Part shown: piece by piece, positions 46,001-58,338 of the stretch
Numbering within the stretch: the first letter of the stretch is position 1
How the letters are laid out: every line of letters starts with the position of its first letter
From: Piromyces finnis finn
Taxonomy: Eukaryota > Fungi > Neocallimastigomycota
Length of the DNA stretch: 64,000 nt
Direction of reading: 5' to 3'
NCBI GenBank assembly: GCA_002104945.1
Contig: MCFH01000003.1
Span: 1,302,001 to 1,366,000 of the forward strand
The notes under the pieces: model-generated
Told to the model about the DNA's origin: nothing
Seen by the model: the letters and a program-made list of their open reading frames with translations, nothing else
Databases searched by the model: none
Position numbers and translations under genes: made by a program

Positions 46001-49000
46001 TCATATTGTTTTTGCAATTCTTGGTATTTGGAGTTTAATTCTTCGGATTCATTTTTCATCTTCTTGCTACCAACTTCTAAGGCAATAATCTTTTCATTAA
46101 TATTTTTAAATTCTTCTTCTTTATTATTAATAACAAGCTTTAATTCATCAATCTTCTTAATGTTTTCTTCTTTTATATTTTCTAAAGATTGTATACTTTC
46201 TTTTAATTTCTTATTTTCCGTTTCAACATCATCGCATTTCTGTTGCATTTCTGTTTTTAATGTCTCTAATGTAGTTTCGTGATTCTTGACATTATCTGAT
46301 TGTTCTTGTTGGAGTTGCTTCATTTTCTCTAATAAAGCATCATAATTCTTTTGCTTTTCATTTATTTCAGAGTTGATTTTTTCGTTCATATTTTGATTTT
46401 CTTCTTCTAATTGTTTAATTTTTTCCATAGAAGCACTATAATTCTTTTCCTTTTCATCTAATTCAGATTTTAATTTTTCGATAGAATCAGTATAGCTATT
46501 TTGCTTTTCATTCATTTCTAATTCTAACTTTTCTACTGCAGCATTATGATCTTTTTCCATCTTGGATTTAAATTGCTCCATGGAAGTATCATGTTCTTTT
46601 TGTTTCATTTCCATCTCAGATTTTAATTTTTCTAATTCAGATTTATAGCTTTGTTGCTTTTCATCAATTTCAGATTTTAACTTGTCTATATTATTATTAC
46701 AGGCACTAATTTCGTTTTCTTTTTCGATTTTTAATTTTTCAATTGCTTCTTTAAGTAGAGTATTTTGTTCTTGAACACTTTCCTTTTCATTATTAGAAAA
46801 AGATAAATCATTCTTTAAGGCAAGAATTTCTTCATTCTTTGTGGATATATTACAATTAAGATTGTTAATTTGTTCTTTAAGTTGAGAAACCTGAGTTTGA
46901 TGTTCATTTTTTAAATTTTCAAGAATGGAAGCATCATACTTTGATTCGCTATTTTCTTGTTCGGCATTAAGACATTGTTTAAGATGTTGAATTTCTAAAT
47001 CATATTGCTTCTTTGTATCTTCAATTTCTTTTTCTTTTTCTCCCATTTTATTTTGAAGATTATCAATGGTTGAGTTCTTATTATCCATTTCATTCTGAAG
47101 ATTAGTGATTTGACTTTCTAAAGATTTTATTTGTTCTTTTTGATTAGATGCTTCATTATTTATGGATTGATTCTCATCTTCCAATAATTTTATTTTTTCT
47201 TCCATGCTTGTTGAATTATTATTCAAGGTTTGTTTTTCTTCTTCCAATGCTTTTATTTTTTCTTCCATGTTTGTTGAATTATTATTCAAGGTTTGTTTTT
47301 CTTCTTCCAATGCTTTTATTTTTTCTTCCATACTTGTTGAATTATTATTCAAGACTTGCTTTTCTTCTTCCAATGTCTTTATCTTTTCTTCCAAGATTAA
47401 TGATTTATTATTTATTTCCTTATTTTCATCTTCTATTTTTTTTATCTTTTCTTCTAAATTGGAAGATTTAATGCTTAAAGCCTGTTTTTCATTTTCTAAT
47501 ACAGAGACCTTTTCTTTTAAACTTGATGACTCATCATTCATATTTAATTTTTCATTTTCTAATGATTTTATGTTTTCCTCTAAATCAGATACTTTAGCAT
47601 TTATTGTTTTCTTTTCATTCTCTAATATTTCTATTTTCTTTTCTTGGTTTGATGTTTTTTCGTTAATATTCTTGTTTTCTTCTTCTAACTTCTTTACTTT
47701 TTCTAGCAAGCCTGATGATGTATCATTCATACTTTGTTTTTCTTGCTCTAATGCTTTTAATTTTTCTTCTAGGCTAGATGATTTATCATTCATTTTTTGT
47801 TTTTCATCTTCTAAGGATTTTATTATTTCTTCTAAATTAATTGATTTTGTATTAATATTATCTTTTTCAGTATTTATCAAATTATACTGATTTTCTAATT
47901 CTTTATATTTTTGATTAAGTAAATTATTTTCTTCATTGAGTTTCTTTAAGTCATCTTTTAATTTTTCATCTTCGACAGTTTGTTCGTTTTGTTTAATTAG
48001 ATTTTCATATTTTTTAAGTTCTTCAGTTTTATTTTTATTTTCTTCATCTAATTGGCTAATTTTTTCTAATAATTCATTCTTTTCATTTGCTTTACTTTCC
48101 TCCAGTGACTTATATTTATTATTAAATTCATTTATTTCTTTTTCTTTATTACTTTCTAATTCATTAATAGTTTCATTAAGATTATTGATTTTGTCTTTAA
48201 ATTCTTTTATCGAATTTTCATTTTTAGACTTCTCATTTTCCAATTCTGTAGCCATATTTTTGTATTCATTTTCTAAATTGTTATTCTTTTTTTCTATTTC
48301 ATTATTTAATTCTTTAAGTCTATTATTAATTAATTGAAGATTTTTTATAGTTTGAGTATTTTCTTCGTCTTTTTTAATAATTTCATTATATGACTTTTGA
48401 ATATTATTTTTTTCATTGTTAGTTTTTTCTAATTCAGAATTAATATTATTTTTTAATATTTCTTTTTCTTCAGCTATTAATTTAAGTTTATTTGTAAGAT
48501 TATTTATATCTTTATTTAATTCTTCTATTTTATTTTTTAAAATTTTATTTTCATTAGATAAATCATTAACTTGTTTATTTTTATTATCATTTGATTCATC
48601 ATCTGAAAAAGAAATTAATGGTTCTTCCTTTGGACTAGCAGATGCATTTGTTATTTTATTTATTTTTTCATTTAAATCATTATTTTCTTGTTTATATTGC
48701 TTATTTTCTTGTTGTAGAGTTGAAATTTCATTTTGTAACTCAATTAATTTTTTTTGTAATAATGATATATTTTCTTGACTATTTACATTTAAAGTACCTT
48801 GTGAAGTTGTAATATCTGAATAAGCTTCTGTCATATCATCCTGACCTAAACTAATATCGTTTTTTTCTTTTAAATCTTTAATTTCTCTATGAAGATTTAT
48901 AATTTTTTCCTTTGCCTTTGCTTTTAATAATCCATAATTTTTATCTTTAATTAAAATCTGCTTTTTTAACACTGCATTCTCCTCAACTGCTTTCAATTGG

Positions 49001-49169
49001 TCATTTTTGTATTTTTCGGTCATTTCTTGATATGTATTATTTAACTTCTGCAATTCCATACATTTTTCTTTTAATTCTTCGACATCCAAATTTTGCAATG
49101 ATTTTGAAAAATTTTGATTCTTTAATTAAAAATTATATATTTAAAAAAAATATTATAAACAAATAACAA

Positions 49170-49203
<34 letters not shown>

Positions 49204-49584
49204 TATTTAATAAATGAAAATAAAATAAAGGTTGTTATAAATTTTAAAATTTTCATTGTTTTAGTTATACTTTGACATTTTTTGTTATCCCGTCAACAAA
49301 ATTTTCAAAATGTTGTGATATATTAAGCACATTTTGAGAATATGCTTTTGAAGTTGGTTTTGGTGAATCAGAATTTGATGCTTCATTCTCATTATTACTA
49401 CTATTATCCGCTTGAGATTGAGCTGAATTATCAGTTAAAGAGCTGTTCAATTTCCTATTTTCAGCCTCGGTGACCTTTATATATTATAAATAACAATTTA
49501 ATAAATAAAAAATTATATACATAAATATATTAACTTTTAAAAATAATATTGTATTAATACCAGCTTCATAAAAGAATTGAACAT
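42811..49584 (-). CDS. GRIP-domain golgin (long coiled coil; Imh1/GCC-like)
   Basis: 1247-aa coiled-coil exon plus several smaller exons. C-terminal GRIP signature VNMEYLKNVVLSFLES..KLVPVITNLLQLDNKE..RNRFW* (stop at 42811). Putative start MFNSFMKL at 49584. Internal exons were only approximately traced. Confidence 0.88.
47141..47833 (-). repeat. ~11 tandem 63-bp (21-aa) coding repeats within the golgin
   Basis: Units such as EEKIKALEEEKQTLNNNSTSM; three are near-identical at DNA level (~47204-47392), the flanking ones degenerate. Confidence 0.85.
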
Positions 49585-50386
49585 TTTTGATTTTTATTTT
49601 ATGTTTCTATATATATATATATAAGAAAATTATAAAAAAAAACTTTTTATAGTTTGAAAATAATATTATATAATAATATAATAGTATTAAGAGTATATTA
49701 GAATTGAATTGTTATTTAACAATTTGAAATTAAATTATTATCAATACATTTATAATTATATAAAAATTGTCAATATTATTTTAAAATTAAAATTTACTGT
49801 ATATTAATTTATAATATGAAATTGTATTTTAAGTAGAATTTAAATAGTTACTTTTATTATATTATCATTTAATAAGTTTATTATAATTGTGTTTTTTAAA
49901 ATTTATTAACAACAACAACAAAAAAAAAACAAAATTTTTAAATATTTTTAAATATCTGTTATACAGTATTTATTTATGTTTATATTTATATATTCATTTA
50001 TATATATATTTATTTATTTTATATATATTTATATATTATATATAATTTTTAAGTACAATTAATTAAAAAATTTCCATTTTCAAGTTCTAAAGCTAACCCT
50101 AATAAGTTACATATTCTTTAATGTATTTGTAAACAAATAACTATATATTATACATAAATTTTTTTTATTAGATTGAATATTATTCTTTAAGTCTATTGGC
50201 TTAGAAATTTGTAATATATGGATAGACCATATTAAATTAATGTATTTTAAATTTTAAAACTAATATATTATAAATATAGTTATAATATAAAGAATATATT
50301 ATAATTAAATATTTTAATTAATGTAGAAAAAAATTTTTTTTTTGACATTATATAATCAATATGGAAATATGGATTATAATACTAAA

Positions 50387-50418
50387 TGAATGAATGAATT
50401 AATAAATAAATAAATGAA

Positions 50419-50457
<39 letters not shown>

Positions 50458-50614
50458 ATGAATGAATGAATAAATAAATAAATAAATAAATGAATAAATA
50501 AATAAATAAATAAATGAATAAATAAATGAATAAATAAATGAATAAATGAATAAATAAATGAATAAATAAATAAATAAATAAATAAATAAATGAATAAATA
50601 AATAAATAAATGAA

Positions 50615-50645
<31 letters not shown>

Positions 50646-50646
50646 A
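50387..50646. repeat. Compound (TAAA/TGAA)n microsatellite
   Basis: Directly visible. Confidence 0.93.
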
Positions 50647-51350
50647 TATTTTAATAAAGCATTACAATAAATATAATAAAAGAGTTCAATATTTTTTTTT
50701 TTTTTTACTTTCTACAAAAAAAAATATTTAACCATATTTTTATAGTTTTAGATCTATAATATATATATAAAAAATATAATATTTATTTTATATTTTTTTT
50801 TATTTATTAATAATTTTTATTATACAAGTATATTATTGAGGAAATAATATATTTATTATTAAAGGTAATTTTATCGAAAAATATATATATATAAACAATA
50901 AAATAAAAGTTCAAAATAATTTCTAAAGATCAAATCTTGTAAAGAATGTATTTGATAATGTCAAAGGGAGGCATATTAAAAGCAAATTGTATGAAGCTTA
51001 TTACAATATTAAAGATAATAAAAAGAAATAGGAGAAAAAGAAGTATTATGGCTTTAAAAACATAATTCATTTTGTTTTATTAAATGGAATGTTATACAAT
51101 ACTTTTATAGTAATTGTTTTTATTCTGAAGTTTTTAAGCTAAGATAATATCTATATTATCATATATGGAGTGAAATTTTACAATAATGTAAATCGTTATT
51201 TGTGAAAAAAGAATTCATTATAGATATGAATATATGAAAATACCAAATAAATAAATAAACAATACATCAATAACTTCATCATAAACAACAACAAAAAAGA
51301 AAAAAAAAACAAAAACAAATAAAATAAATAAATAAATAAATAAAATAAAA

Positions 51351-51381
<31 letters not shown>

Positions 51382-51525
51382 ATATATATAAATAAAGATT
51401 ATATTTTTTTTAAATATATATATGAAAGATGTTAACAAATACTTTATTTTTTATTATTTATAATCATTAAAATTTAAAGATTTTCAGTTAAAGATAAAAC
51501 TATACAAATATAAAGAATAACACAT

Positions 51526-54500
51526 ATGGTAAATAGTAGATAATTTTTTAGTATATAAATAATTAAAGTAATATTTATAGTAATGAAAATGATAATTAAA
51601 TTTAATAGGAGGAAAGATATGCTGGAATTATCTTTTACAAATTTGGAAAAGGTCCAGAATTTTTATTGATTAACGATTCTTACGCTAAAAAGAAATTTTG
51701 GGCTCCACCAAAGGGAAAGATTATTGGTCAAGAAGATGAATTACAGTAATTATTAAAAATATTATAAAAATTATAATTCATTTAAGAAAGACGTATTGAT
51801 TTTAAATTTAAAAAAATAGATGTGCCATACGTGAAGCTAATAAGATTACTGGATTAGTTACAAGAGATTTTCAAGTTGAAGAAGATTTCAAAGCTGAATT
51901 TAAATACTTAGCTGAAACTAGGTATTTTTTTTAATATATATGAATAATTTAGTCATCAGAAAATCAACATCTTAACTATAATATAAAAATATAAATGAAA
52001 TTATAAATATTATAGACCAAAAAATGTTGTTTTCTTTTTAGCTCAATTAACAGATCCAACACACAAAATTTATCCAACTGCAGAAGGAATTCATTTCAAT
52101 TGGCTTCCATTCCAACAAGCCGCTGATAAAGCAGTTTTCAAAAATATGCAAGAAGTTTTAAGACAAGCTCAAGAATATGTTGAAGAAAAGAAATCAAAGT
52201 ATAATCTTAATAGTAATGGAAATGTTAATGGTAACGGAAATGGAAATAACTATAATAATTATCAATCAAATTATTCACCAAATTATCAAAAGAATTTTGA
52301 TATGAATAATGACAGACGTTTTAAGAGACCATCCCATGATGAAATGGGAAATATGAGAATGGGAAATCAAGGAAAGAATCCATTCATGAAATCACCAAGT
52401 CCATTTAATCAAGGAAGACCAGATAAAAACTATAGACAAATGAATGGTGTTAATTTAACTCGTTCATTTAGTTCAAATAGTAATGGATATTCAAACAATA
52501 ATTATTCAAATAATTATAATCAAAATAATAGTGGACCATTTGGACCTCACAATCCAGGAAATTACGGAATGCAACAACAACAACAACAAGAAAATCATTT
52601 ATATAAAACTAGACTTTGTGAAAGATTTGAAGCTGAAGGAACTTGCCCATACGGAAATAAGGTAGATTATTATTGATAAGTAATATAATAAATATAAATT
52701 ATTTATATTAAATATTAAAATTTTATATAAATTCTTATATTATTTGGGAACTTAAAAATTGTTATAGTGTCATTTCGCTCATGGTACTGTTGAACTTAGA
52801 AGAATGCCTCAACAACAATCATATGATGATCAATATATGAATCAACACCAACAAATGCCACAAAGTTCAAATCCACTTTACAAAACTCGTTTATGTGAAC
52901 GTTTCATGAATGAACACTATTGTCAATATGGTCCAAAGTAATTATATTACATATATTTTAGTTAAATAAAATAATTATATATATTAATTATAACTTTTAT
53001 TTTTTTTATAAATTAGATGTATTTTTGCTCATGGTAATTTTCTGTTTAATTTAAATGCCATTAATAAATTTTAGTTTTAGTGATAATATAGTTTTCTTAA
53101 TTATCATTTCATTCAACAATTATCATAATTGTTATTATTAGTTGTAATATTGATTTATAAATATAAAATCATATTTATTATATTAAACGAAAATAATTGT
53201 AGGTCCTGAAGAACTTAGAGGAAGACAAAATGATATGGGAGGTAGAGAAATGGGTAGAGATATGAGAAGTGATATGGGAAGATATGATATGGATAGACCA
53301 AATGATATGGATGACGATTTAAATAATAGAATGTATGATATGAGTCTTAGAAGTCCAGGTCAAAGATCAAATTCACCATCAGCATTTAATCAATATCGTC
53401 CACCACAACCAGGTTATTACCCACATTCTGCATTACATAAAGCTTCTACTAGTGTATCACCACATCGTCAACAATTTAGCTCACAACAATCAAATGGTTC
53501 TCAAAGTAAATAAATAGCCATAATAGCCATAAAATATTTATACAATATATTTATTTATAAAAATTAAAATACTAATAATTTTAAAAATCATTTTATTTTT
53601 TTATTAAAAACTTATTTTTATACTCACTATAAAAGTGAGTCCAACAAGGTAATATATTCTTATAATTTATATGTTAGCTTATAAAATGAAAAAAATATAA
53701 ATATTGTAGTATTTAAAATGTCAATTTATTTATTAATAAAAACTTTATTTAATATGTAAATTAAGTCCAATGAGAGAACAATTAGATGTTATGAGAGAAC
53801 AAGAAAAGAAACAAGAAACTGTTGAAAAACCAGAAACTGTAATTGAAAAGAAAAAAGAATTAGAAAAACCAGTTGTTAAGGATTTCCTTAAGAGTGATGT
53901 AAATATTATTTTATAAATTATATTTTGAAATGACATTAATTGTATAATAACTTAAATTTTATTATTAATATTAAAGATTGAAGAAGACAAATCATGGATG
54001 AAGGTTGTTGAATTAACTAGTGATGAAAAAGAAAAATTAGAAAGCCTGTAAGCAATTCAAAACTTATTTGAAAATAGAAATTTTAAATTAAAAAATTTTA
54101 AATATTAATACATACAAATTATTTCAATATATATATGTTAGTAAAGTTTTAGAAAAGCGTGCATCCCCAGCAGCTCCAAAACAATATTTAGATGATCCAG
54201 TAATTATTTCATTAAGTGAATACTTTAGTGAAGGTGAACATGATATAAAGGATGAAGTTAAGGAAATTACTCGTTTAGAATTTAAGCATGATTTAAGTAA
54301 ACAACAATTATTCAATGTTTTAGTTCCAAGTTTATTTGATGAATCATACAATGTTGAAAAACTTACTGCCAGAAAAGACTTATTCTTAGCTGTATGTTTA
54401 TATTGTTTAATACTAAATAATAATTTTATAATTTTGTTTTATATAATATTAATTTATTTTTATTTATCATAAATATTCATATTATTATTTTTATATTGAA

Positions 54501-54884
54501 TTTAAATAAAATAAATATTCCAGTTTATTAAGAGTGCTAATGACCAAATTTATTTCTTGAAATCATGGGAAAAATACTTATCATCATCAAGAATGTCTGC
54601 TATCTTACCAAGAACTCCTGTTATATTTAAAGATTTTTATGATATTGATTTAGTAGAAGAAGATAATATATTAGTTTGGTATGATGAAAGTTCAGATTCA
54701 TCAATTGTAAAGCAAAAATGTGAACCATTTATTACTTGGTAAATTTATATTTAATTTATTACATTTTATTATTATATAAGCAAATTATATCATTTTTTGA
54801 TATCTAATTTAATATAATTATAATTAATTTTTTATCATTTGAAATAGGTTAAAAACAGCTGAAGAAGATTCTGAATCCGATTAA
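51526..54884 (+). CDS. Putative fusion protein: NUDT2-like Nudix, N/Q-rich region, 2x CCCH zinc finger, eIF5-type W2 domain (~698 aa, 13 exons)
   Basis: Exons 51526-51528, 51609-51745, 51820-51921, 52016-52661, 52768-52937, 53017-53033, 53203-53505, 53636-53648, 53766-53898, 53977-54047, 54142-54391, 54524-54738 and 54848-54884 are all GT-AG and phase-consistent (2097 nt). Nudix RYAGIIFY..FLLI..WAPPKG; ZF YKTRLCERF..CPYGNKCHFAHG and YKTRLCERF..CQYGPKCIFAHG; W2 FYDIDLVEEDNILVWY..KCEPFITWLKTAEEDSESD*. The domains are confident; the join through 53636-53648 is less so. Confidence 0.8.
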
Positions 54885-55126
54885 ATTCTTTAAATATTTA
54901 TTTATTTTATTCATTCAGTATTCATAATACTTTTTTTTTTTTTTAATAAAAATTTAAAAATTTTTTTACATTCATTTTTATCATCTAAATTCCCCAAATA
55001 CTTATTATTATAAAATAAATTAATTATTATTTAACGTATTTTCAAATTGATACCTTTTAATGATATTGAAAAGTATTTTATTAATAATACATAAATAATA
55101 ATCAATATAATAATAAAAAGAAATAG

Positions 55127-55171
<45 letters not shown>

Positions 55172-55936
55172 AAAAGAAAAAATATAAGAATACTAAAGTT
55201 AAAACGAAAAATTCTTATAAATATTTTTTTTTTTTTTAACAATTGAAAATAATGTAAATGAAATTTAGCCTATAATAATATGTATTATATATTATTAAAA
55301 ATAAATATCATATCATAATAAAAATAATAACAAATACATACACCTATAAATAACAATAAAAAATATATATATATATTTTATTCTTGTTATATTTTATTTA
55401 TAAATCTATTATAAAATACTTTTAGGTAGAGTAATAATAATAATAATAATAATAATATAAATATAGTAATGAATTATCATTACTTTGTATCATCATCATT
55501 TTGTCATCATTATTTTGTTATAATAAACATGTTAGAATGATATATAGTACAAATAAAATGATTAAAAAAAAAAAAATAAAAAACCAAATAATTATAATTA
55601 ATATTTTTTAGATAAAAATATGCAAAAAATATTATGTTATTATATATTGTAGATAATAAACTTTAGTTACATTAAAAAATAAAACTATTATATTTAAATA
55701 ATAGGTTAATTGATACTATTTAATTAAGTTTCTTTTTATTTTATTATATTATGAATAATTTAAATTCTTTCCTTTATTCATGGAATACATTATACTTTAT
55801 TAAAAATTAATATAAAATTCATTAATTTTTACATTAGGTTTTTTAATATAAAATTAAGTTTTATTCCTTTTTTACATATATTTTTTTTTTTTTTTTTTTA
55901 ATTTTTCAATTTGAATTACAAGATTAAAATATAAAA

Positions 55937-58338
55937 ATGAGTAGCTCATTTTATACAATACTTAAATCAATAAATTCATATTTTGATATTATATCAGAAA
56001 TTTTTAGAAAACATTTTATTGAAATTATAAAATCTAAATATTTATTTGTATTATTTTTATCTGTAAGAAATATAATAAAGAATATAATATATTTTTAACA
56101 TTAATATGTTAACAAAATATATTTTAATGGAATTTAATTCAATATATATATTTTTTTAAAAAAAAAAAAATAGACGCTTGCTTTTCATCATGCTTTAAAT
56201 ATAGAACCTTCATATAAACGAAAAAACATACCATTTTATATAAGAGGCTTCTTTAGTATCACACTTTTATATTTTTTCAATCCAATATTTAAAACTCTTT
56301 TTACTATTTCTGTAACAAGCAACAAAGAATTTCTAGCAAAAGTTTTTAATTATTACACAAATTTTTCCTTTGATTCATTGTATGAAAAATTACCCAAACC
56401 TGTTTATGAAATAGAGAATTGCCTATTTTATTTTTATATACTTTTATGTATATTACTTATATTTATTGTATTATTAAATTGTTTAGAACACAGTCTAGTT
56501 GTAAATCATGCTGATGTAATACACATTAAATTTTATTTATACTTAATTTATATAAATAATAATAATAATAATAAAACAAAAATTAAGTTAAAAGAATCTT
56601 TAATAATTTCTAAATTTTTATAATAATCGTTAATTTTATAAAAATAGATTTTTAATCTTCTTATTGCAGGAATTAGTCTTCAATTTTTTAATGTAATACA
56701 TTCAAAATCCCTTCTCATAATTTCGTTTGTTTATTCAATCGAGGTTTTTTTCTATATAATATTATTAGCATTTCCAAAATCTGGTTTACAATTTCAAATT
56801 ATTCCATCAACTTTGACATTTATCATATTGTCAATATACTTTTTCTTATGTATAAAATTTGAAGTACCTTCACATTTTGTCATTTTACTTGTATGTATAT
56901 TAAATAAATTATTAAAATAAAATTATTCATTGGTTTCTAAATGTTAGTATAATATTATAATATTATATTAAAATTACTATTTAGTATATAAGAAAATATT
57001 TAGAGTTTACTGTTATAGGATTAGTTTGTATGTTGTTAATCATTAATATGATAATGAATTTCATTGAAAAAAAGCCATTAATAAATCCAAAGTTATTTAA
57101 TTCTCTATCAAAAGAAGATGATTTTTACACTATATTAATAAAATTTGCAGAAGATGTTATTAATTTATATAATAATGATAAAGAACAAAAAAATACAAAA
57201 ATATTGGATAAAGATAATATGAAGTATATGAATTTGAATGGTATGTATAAATCTATTATTTTAATGTAAATATAAAATACTAATAATATTATTTATATGC
57301 TTAATATCTATCTATATATATGCATATTCATTATAAAACAATAAAATAAGCAAATAAAAGTAAAAATAAAGAAAATATAAATGGTTATGATAATGAATAC
57401 AAAAATGATATTAATGAAAGCAATCCATCCACTGTAGTTTCAATATCAATTATAAGTTATCCTATTGAACCAACTTTATTTGTTATTATTTCTAATGCCT
57501 TAAAAAACATATTGAAATTAATGATAGGATTACCTTATAATAATGATGATGAAAATGAAAAACTTATTTCAGAACTTGATAATGTTCTTTATCAACAGGT
57601 TAGATCAAGCATACCATTTAGTTCTGATACGGAAGACTCAGATTATGAAGATATGGATGATATGAAGACCGAAATAAATGATGGTATATTTAATAATAAA
57701 TTTTTATTTGACTATATTATTATATTATTAATTCTTTCAAAACCTAATATTTTATCTTTTTAAATTTAATATTTAAAGATATGATGAACGAAACAGAATT
57801 AAATGACAGCGATGATAGTATAAGTTATGAATACATTAATGGAAATGAAAGTGAAGATGAAAGTGAAAGTGACGAATCTAATGATATTTTTAAAGAATTA
57901 TTTGATATTAATTATAAACATTTCAATTTAGATTCTTTAAAAAATAATATAATATTAACTCGTAATCAAAGTGATATCTTAAAATATAAAAATGATATTC
58001 ATATGCCAATTTTCAGAAATATAAAATCAGATAATATAGAAAATAGTTCAAATAAAAATAGTAATTCAGTCATTTCAAATCTCTTTAAAAAGAATGGATT
58101 CAACAATAATAGGTATCAATTAATGGATGAAGATGATCATGAAAAAATCAAAAATCAATTTTTGGCTACTGAATTATGCGTTGCATGCCATAAAAGACCT
58201 AGATCTATCGTTTTATGGCCATGTGGATGCTTCTGCTTATGTGATACTTGTAGAAAAGTTTTAGCATTGCAAAAATATGATAAATGCCCATGTACAAACA
58301 ATAAAGTTAAAGGTTATTCAAAGGTTTTTGTACCATAA
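55937..58338 (+). CDS. Multi-pass membrane RING E3 ligase, Asi1/Asi3-like
   Basis: Phase-0 exons 55937-56062, from 56174, from ~56648 and from 56985 encode several hydrophobic helices. The C-terminal RING CVACHKRPRSIVLWPCGCFCLCDTCRKVLAL..KCPCTNNKVKGYSKVFVP* resembles the Asi1/Asi3 RING. Middle exons are approximate. Confidence 0.75.

Follow-up and report, generated by a model that had tools for sequence, protein, structure and literature searches.

A three-module protein of Piromyces finnis that joins a NUDT2-like Nudix domain, TTP-like CCCH zinc fingers and an eIF5-type W2 domain

The stretch of Piromyces finnis DNA analysed here (the window: 64,000 nucleotides (nt), GenBank assembly GCA_002104945.1, contig MCFH01000003.1, positions 1,302,001 to 1,366,000 of the forward strand) carries a gene for a protein of 698 amino acids (aa) in which a Nudix domain, two CCCH zinc fingers and a W2 domain follow one another. 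Rebuilding the gene model from the raw sequence gave 13 coding exons, which sum to 2097 nt and form one open frame, with every intron bounded by GT..AG. The translated model is identical in every residue to the GenBank protein BCR36DRAFT_579880 (hypothetical protein, Piromyces finnis, 698 aa), and the annotated public gene span, 51526-54884, coincides with the model coordinates, beginning only at the ATG and lacking the upstream non-coding exon described below. Comparison of GCA_002104945.1 MCFH01000003.1:1350526-1359884 with window positions 48526-57884 showed 0 mismatches over 9359 bases. The gene model and its family membership are practically certain.

The single-gene reading had already been put forward in an earlier note on this DNA, against a list of open reading frames (ORFs) that does split the region into unrelated pieces. 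The note had placed the apparent stop, an in-frame TAA at 53511-53513, a few letters beyond a GTAAAT donor at 53506, and had joined the CCCH half to the W2 half through a 13-nt microexon at 53636-53648 that maintains the frame between them. The donor and the stop lie in the sequence as described, and its 13 exons, 2097 nt, microexon and splice sites all agree with the rebuilt model, the RNA contigs and the GenBank protein. At the two junctions singled out for checking, 53505/53636 and 53648/53766, the contigs of all four runs carry the microexon. Its remark that an intergenic gap of ~250 bp would be short for this window also finds support, as one neighbouring annotated gene ends ~1.9 kb upstream and the other begins ~2.1 kb downstream.

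The RNA data comprised four runs of one organism from three studies, with contigs aligned to positions 50900-55600 and both repeat regions (51290-51395 and 55130-55170) left out of the read comparison. Of the words sampled from the stretch, about half were present in these runs, a share consistent with spliced exons. Each run yielded one spliced contig (2243, 2152, 2098 and 2007 nt) along the predicted exon chain, and in each of the four both tiny exons, of 17 and 13 nt, were found within a single contig. The joint from 53505 to 53763 carries TGAGTCCAAC in between, followed by AAG, which can be either the last letters of the microexon or the three that precede 53766; read through, the contig is exactly exon 7, TGAGTCCAACAAG and exon 9. 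The joint from 52937 to 53202 carries ATGTATTTTTGCTCAT, the 17-nt exon, again in four runs. Read depth was 0-7 in the intron bin 53569-53725, against 180-600 on exons. Skipping of the microexon is predicted to give a stop after ..SQIQ, and intron retention past 53505 to give ..SQSK and then a stop, each with a 461-aa product without W2, while skipping of the 17-nt exon would shift the frame and is predicted to lead to a stop after ..YGPKS. Microexon skipping or intron retention is supported by no contig in the four runs; since rare variants are lost in contigs, an isoform without W2 may still exist at a low level, and such a 461-aa form could in principle switch the W2 module on and off.

The transcript has at least one non-coding exon upstream of the coding region. 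The longest 5' extension is found in the contig of one run (X1), which runs 24 letters past 51474; the sole match of those letters in the window is 50835-50858. This defines an intron of 615 nt in the 5' untranslated region (5'UTR), at 50865-51479, with GT..AG borders, a donor TTAAAG/GTAATT at 50864/50865 and splicing to 51480. The aligned end of the upstream exon is shifted (50858 instead of 50864) because TTAAAG is shared by both sides. A further intron of 80 nt lies directly 3' of the ATG (ATG/GTAAAT, 51526-51608). Its joint is present in the X1 contig only, and is absent from the other contigs because they begin further downstream. The 5'UTR intron also holds a microsatellite of the (AAATAAAT)n type (51290-51395), and a long poly(A) run is located at 55130-55170, ~250 bp downstream of the stop codon. 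At window position 51668, run X3 has A for G in the third base of a Leu codon (TTG to TTA), a synonymous change that is probably a strain difference. One further joint, from 51464 to 52726 (CA..TA, skipping 1261, with a side of 21 letters; runs X2 and X4), was judged to be probably an assembly chimera at AT-rich sequence and was rejected.

The combination of the three modules is conserved well beyond Piromyces. A search with the W2 exon returned 45 proteins, the best of which was a 671-aa protein with 80% identity and W2 at its C-terminus, and this orthologue (P0001) served as query for a full-length family search. At a threshold of E<=1e-5, 149 homologues were obtained, and NUDIX, zf-CCCH and W2 were found together in nearly all of the 120 listed. 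The query matched the P. finnis protein at 1e-280, and chytrid, glomeromycete, mucoralean, mortierellalean and kickxellalean proteins at 1e-114 to 1e-60. The same architecture is present in more than 100 homologues from Neocallimastigomycota, Chytridiomycota, Olpidium, Kickxellomycota (Coemansia, Dispira, Dimargaris), Basidiobolus, Mucoromycota (Mucorales, Umbelopsis, Endogone), Mortierellomycota and Glomeromycota. Dikarya were not represented among the matches listed, no profile search having been aimed at Dikarya or at non-fungal members. The closest orthologue (73% overall identity) is an uninterrupted ORF of 2016 nt on three transcript contigs from another organism, and six further Neocallimastigomycota orthologues are continuous across the region encoded by the microexon, so that on the question of one gene or separate genes in relatives the single-gene reading stands as well. 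One family member bears the name Cth1p in UniRef. A Coemansia sp. member (P0133, 956 aa) additionally carries alcohol-dehydrogenase-type domains (PF00107, PF08240) and may be a merged gene model.

Literature searches for the Nudix, CCCH and W2 combination yielded a single publication, PMC12210691 (BMC Genomics 2025), which covers 183 fungal proteomes, P. finnis included, and defines a "NUDIX subfamily A" of 84 proteins, all of them fungal and most with W2 and zf-CCCH. The subfamily is described there as distantly related to human NUDT2, with a 'well-preserved' motif and conserved residues of diadenosine tetraphosphate (Ap4A) hydrolases, and Ap4A is proposed as its substrate from docking, which favours Ap4A and diadenosine triphosphate (Ap3A) (PMC12210691). 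The P. finnis protein has a NUDT2-related PF00293, two central PF00642, a C-terminal PF02020 and full-length homology across phyla, which places it in this subfamily with no structural difference, and its UniRef name is bis(5'-nucleosyl)-tetraphosphatase. Both the public gene model and the published family thus predate this analysis, and the gene and its architecture are already known. The earlier statement that no characterized protein has this architecture holds in that the published work consists of docking and expression data; the architecture itself, however, is on record in GenBank, UniRef and PMC12210691.

An AlphaFold model of the 698-aa protein was built on a family alignment of 108 sequences, which was also the basis of the residue counts given below. 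In this model the Nudix fold (aa 1-148) has a predicted local distance difference test score (pLDDT) above 90, the two zinc fingers about 86 and the W2/HEAT domain (aa 546-691) above 95, and two disordered linkers, roughly 120 and 150 residues long, separate the folded modules. On the exon translations Pfam detected two zf-CCCH domains and W2, and on full-length relatives NUDIX, zf-CCCH and W2; the Nudix domain was missed on single exons because it is split over three of them. Within the block DKSWMKVVEL.., residues 523-531 form a predicted short helix upstream of W2 that is conserved across the family. The 17-nt exon at 53017-53033 codes for the middle of the second zinc finger. The positions of exons and modules are collected in Table 1.

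Table 1. Exons and protein modules of the gene, in window coordinates.
Feature	Position	Strand	Remarks
Non-coding 5'UTR exon (minimum extent)	50835-50864	+	X1 transcript contig
Coding exon 1	51526-51528	+	ATG, the last three bases of exon 51480-51528, the remainder being 5'UTR; joint 51527 to 51608, GT..AG, X1 contig
Coding exon 2	51609-51745	+	
Coding exon 3	51820-51921	+	
Coding exon 4	52016-52661	+	
Coding exon 5	52768-52937	+	
Coding exon 6, 17 nt	53017-53033	+	Contig letters ATGTATTTTTGCTCAT, all four runs
Coding exon 7	53203-53505	+	Last part of finger region and disordered linker 2
Coding exon 8, 13-nt microexon TGAGTCCAACAAG	53636-53648	+	All four runs
Coding exons 9-10	53766-53898, 53977-54047	+	Remaining linker 2 and conserved helix
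Coding exons 11-13	54142-54391, 54524-54738, 54848-54884	+	W2/HEAT domain and stop codon
Nudix fold, aa 1-148 including the ATG exon	51609-52217	+	Coding exons 2-4
Nudix box, aa 37-59	51714-51856	+	K55/I56 at 51842-51847
N/Q-rich disordered linker 1, aa 149-271	52218-52586	+	pLDDT below 50, low conservation
CCCH finger 1 with LYKTRLC lead-in, aa 276-301	52599-52782	+	Split by intron 52662-52767
CCCH finger 2 with LYKTRLC lead-in, aa 333-358	52876-53032	+	Exon 5 and 17-nt exon
Block DKSWMKVVEL.., aa 513-531	53989-54045	+	Family consensus K.W.KVVE
W2/HEAT eIF5-type domain, aa 546-691	54142-54884	+	Exons 11-13; Pfam W2 E=1.6e-11
Acidic/aromatic box 1	54638-54682	+	
Acidic/aromatic box 2	54728-54869	+	

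The best solved relative of the Nudix module is human NUDT2 (3U53), both by sequence (E=2.4e-17, 29% identity) and by fold (target template modelling score 0.88, root-mean-square deviation 1.6 A). In the alignment, AIREANKITGL of P. finnis stands opposite ALRETQEEAGI of NUDT2, and the P. finnis sequence departs from the canonical box GX5EX7REUXEEXGU in that E43 and E52 are kept while K55 and I56 replace the EE pair. Among the 108 members, the first glutamate (E43 in P. finnis) is Glu in 102; the second (E52), which corresponds to NUDT2 E58, is Glu in 74 (Asn in 19, Ala in 5, Val in 4); and the third (K55) is Glu in 75 (Asp in 18, Lys in 6). The fourth (I56) is never Glu, the residues found there being Ile (58), Ala (13), Thr (10), Leu (9), Val (7) and Gln (4). 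In place of the RE that includes NUDT2 E58, the alignment has RN in Glomeromycota and RA or RV in Umbelopsis, Dispira and some Spizellomycetes; these lineages have lost the residue independently of one another. The residues W32, P35, K36, G37, F70, Y76 and K83 are conserved in at least 90% of the alignment, and W32, P35, G37, Y76 and K83 are equivalent to the NUDT2 contact residues W38, P41, G43, Y82 and K89. Most of these conserved positions are listed as Ap4A-hydrolase contact residues in PMC12210691. A pocket that stays fixed while the catalytic carboxylates are repeatedly eroded is what would be expected if the module served for binding.

Human NUDT2 shares with the P. finnis protein the fold and the conserved W/P/G/Y/K ligand contacts. 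However, it is a single-domain enzyme with RETQEEAGI, whereas the P. finnis protein has REANKITGL and two more domains. NUDT2 acts on RNA 5' ends and dephosphorylates PPP-RNA, and its E58A mutant is inactive (PMC8616924). When the Nudix part alone was used to look for a stand-alone NUDT2 in anaerobic fungi, two fragments of orthologues were all that came up. Another comparison is offered by CF Im25 (NUDT21), a Nudix fold in an RNA-processing factor in which two of the four box glutamates are gone and the fourth is Ile. CF Im25, without the second and fourth glutamates, binds Ap4A with micromolar affinity and does not detectably hydrolyse it (PMC2425470). It differs from the P. finnis protein in belonging to PF13869, in the glutamates lost (third and fourth in P. 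finnis), in binding UGUA RNA via the Nudix domain itself, and in being a nuclear protein of 3'-end processing without CCCH or W2. As regards NUDIX subfamily A, its members are read as Ap4A hydrolases in PMC12210691, whereas in the present alignment the fourth glutamate is absent family-wide and the lineage of P. finnis shows a second loss. The "pseudo-Nudix" status of this lineage is therefore considered likely on these residues, and for P. finnis itself the chances that the domain would be non-catalytic are judged to be even.

The two zinc fingers each have the form C-x8-C-x5-C-x3-H with a LYKTRLC lead-in, and their best solved matches are the tandem zinc fingers of the TTP family (TTP/TIS11d), with E values of about 1e-16 to 1e-18. 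Members of the TTP family have a fixed inter-finger linker of 18 residues, a (R/K)YKTELC lead-in and a C-terminal NOT1-binding motif. With TTP/ZFP36/TIS11, including yeast Cth1/Cth2 and Zfs1, the P. finnis protein shares the two C-x8-C-x5-C-x3-H fingers, YKT.LC and the same aromatic positions. However, its inter-finger spacing is 37 residues (29-123 across the family, median 39.5), R replaces the E of the lead-in (YKTRLC), and inspection of the C-terminus, made without a motif search, found no NOT1-binding type, the last 150 residues being W2 and ending in ..AEEDSESD. These differences in linker, lead-in and C-terminus indicate a TTP-like protein and not a member of the TTP family. The earlier description of the fingers as TIS11/TTP-type is thus upheld for their sequence, but not for the spacing (37 against 18) or for the lead-in (YKTRLC, not YKTELC).

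The W2 domain was recognized by Pfam on exon 12 alone (E=1.6e-11), and its best solved matches are the C-terminal domains (CTDs) of eIF5, first human (2IU1, E=9.4e-10) and then yeast, with eIF2B-epsilon at 3e-4. The two boxes quoted in the earlier note align with the eIF5 acidic/aromatic boxes DLLEEEVIISWS and WLKEAEEESS, and their residues Y654, D655, E661, W667, F684, W687, L688 and E692-694 are conserved across the family. Both the eIF5-type W2 with kept boxes and the NUDT2 type of the Nudix domain had been proposed there, and both assignments are borne out by the best solved matches. The protein resembles eIF5 in its W2 CTD, but the N-terminal eIF5/eIF2-beta-type domain (PF01873) is absent from it; this domain was found only in five genuine eIF5 hits and not in family members. 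It resembles 5MP/BZW in having W2 without the eIF5 GAP domain, but does not have the HEAT/bZIP part of 5MP. Instead, and in this it differs from both eIF5 and 5MP, the W2 of the P. finnis protein is joined to an RNA-binding module.

The best overall explanation, held with slightly more than even confidence, is that the protein is an mRNA-bound translation regulator with a ligand-binding and probably non-catalytic Nudix module. The fingers would bind single-stranded RNA rich in U and A within particular mRNAs; each would probably read a short site, and the long linker would let the spacing of sites vary. The acidic/aromatic boxes of W2 would contact partners of the eIF5-CTD type, the lysine boxes of eIF2-beta and eIF3c, and through these contacts the bound mRNA would be coupled to the initiation machinery. 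The sequence does not tell the direction of the effect, which could be repression if eIF2 is sequestered, as it is by eIF5-mimic proteins, or activation if it is recruited. The ligand of the Nudix module would most likely be a dinucleoside polyphosphate or resemble an RNA 5' end, and would be bound but not efficiently hydrolysed, since the residues that hold Ap4A in NUDT2 are kept and metal-binding glutamates are lost; the module could act as a sensor or as a second contact with an RNA end. Translational control via eIF2 or the pre-initiation complex is suggested only tentatively, by analogy. The function originally envisaged for the protein, that of reading an mRNA 3' element, engaging the 5' end and recruiting or sequestering eIF2, is plausible.

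Several observations weigh against this explanation. The AlphaFold model has a predicted template modelling score of 0.41, meaning no confident arrangement between the domains, and none of its interdomain contacts is confident. Neither the spacing nor the lead-in of the fingers is that of TTP, so that specificity for AU-rich RNA is not assured. W2 domains have several partners, among which eIF2-beta would be the likeliest here by analogy. The remaining points concern the Nudix domain. A degenerate Nudix box is compatible with activity, as in E. coli NudD/Gmm, in which two glutamates are changed to hydrophobic residues and which are still enzymes, with a different chemistry (PMC5389931). A different account would make the protein an active hydrolase of Ap4A or RNA 5' ends that CCCH and W2 merely place on messenger ribonucleoproteins or ribosomes. 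Most family members retain three of the four glutamates, NUDT2 is closest by fold and by sequence, and the Ap4A contacts are conserved. Hydrolysis of Ap4A is also the published proposal for subfamily A, for which docking favours Ap4A and Ap3A (PMC12210691), and dephosphorylation of PPP-RNA is an activity of NUDT2 itself (PMC8616924). However, catalysis is not measured by docking. None of the 108 members has the fourth glutamate, and the third is replaced by K or A in P. finnis and its relatives. The residue that matches NUDT2 E58, where the alanine mutant is inactive, is N in Glomeromycota and A or V in some others. Catalytic positions that drift beside fixed ligand contacts correspond to the pattern of a binding module, with CF Im25 as precedent, and the hydrolase account is considered unlikely.

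A TTP-like adaptor of mRNA decay, with fingers that bind AU-rich elements and a C-terminal HEAT/W2 domain that recruits decay or deadenylation factors, is equally unlikely. The fingers are nearest to the tandem zinc fingers of TTP/TIS11d, and there is the family member named Cth1p. TTP proteins carry an effector-recruiting motif at the C-terminus. However, eIF5 CTDs outrank every other solved HEAT domain as matches, both boxes are conserved, the C-terminus showed no NOT1-binding type on inspection, and the fingers are spaced differently from those of the TTP family. The idea of two adjacent genes, one for Nudix and CCCH ending at TAA 53511-53513 and one for W2 from ATG 53770, with the joined form an artefact of assembly or read-through, is highly improbable and was rejected as the main form, since, although both pieces are open alone (461 and 233 aa) and contigs are not single molecules, a canonical double splice runs through the 13-nt exon in four runs of three studies with near-zero intron depth, and more than 100 species have the orthologue as a single protein, with uninterrupted ORFs on transcript contigs among them.

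The P. finnis protein belongs to a conserved and expressed family in which an Ap4A-type pocket is physically linked to TTP-like RNA recognition and to an eIF5-type interaction domain. Raw sequence was enough to recover the correct 13-exon model with its 3-nt coding exon and its microexons of 17 and 13 nt, and the result duplicates the public annotation. What is added to the published description of the family is the absence of the fourth glutamate, the conservation of the contact residues, the eIF5-type boxes of W2 and the spacing of the fingers. One catalytic glutamate is lost throughout the family, and others have been lost independently in several lineages, which argues against the published "Ap4A hydrolase" label; the most useful outcome is this argument that the Nudix domain binds its ligand and does not cleave it. 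With low confidence, it may be supposed that the family is an alarmone- or 5'-end-sensing translational regulator, in which a pseudo-hydrolase derived from NUDT2 would bind Ap4A or a cap-like RNA end and gate a TTP-like RNA binder that tethers eIF2 or the pre-initiation complex via its eIF5-type W2. If true, this would represent an ancestral fungal circuit from stress to translation, retained throughout the early-diverging phyla but lost in Dikarya.

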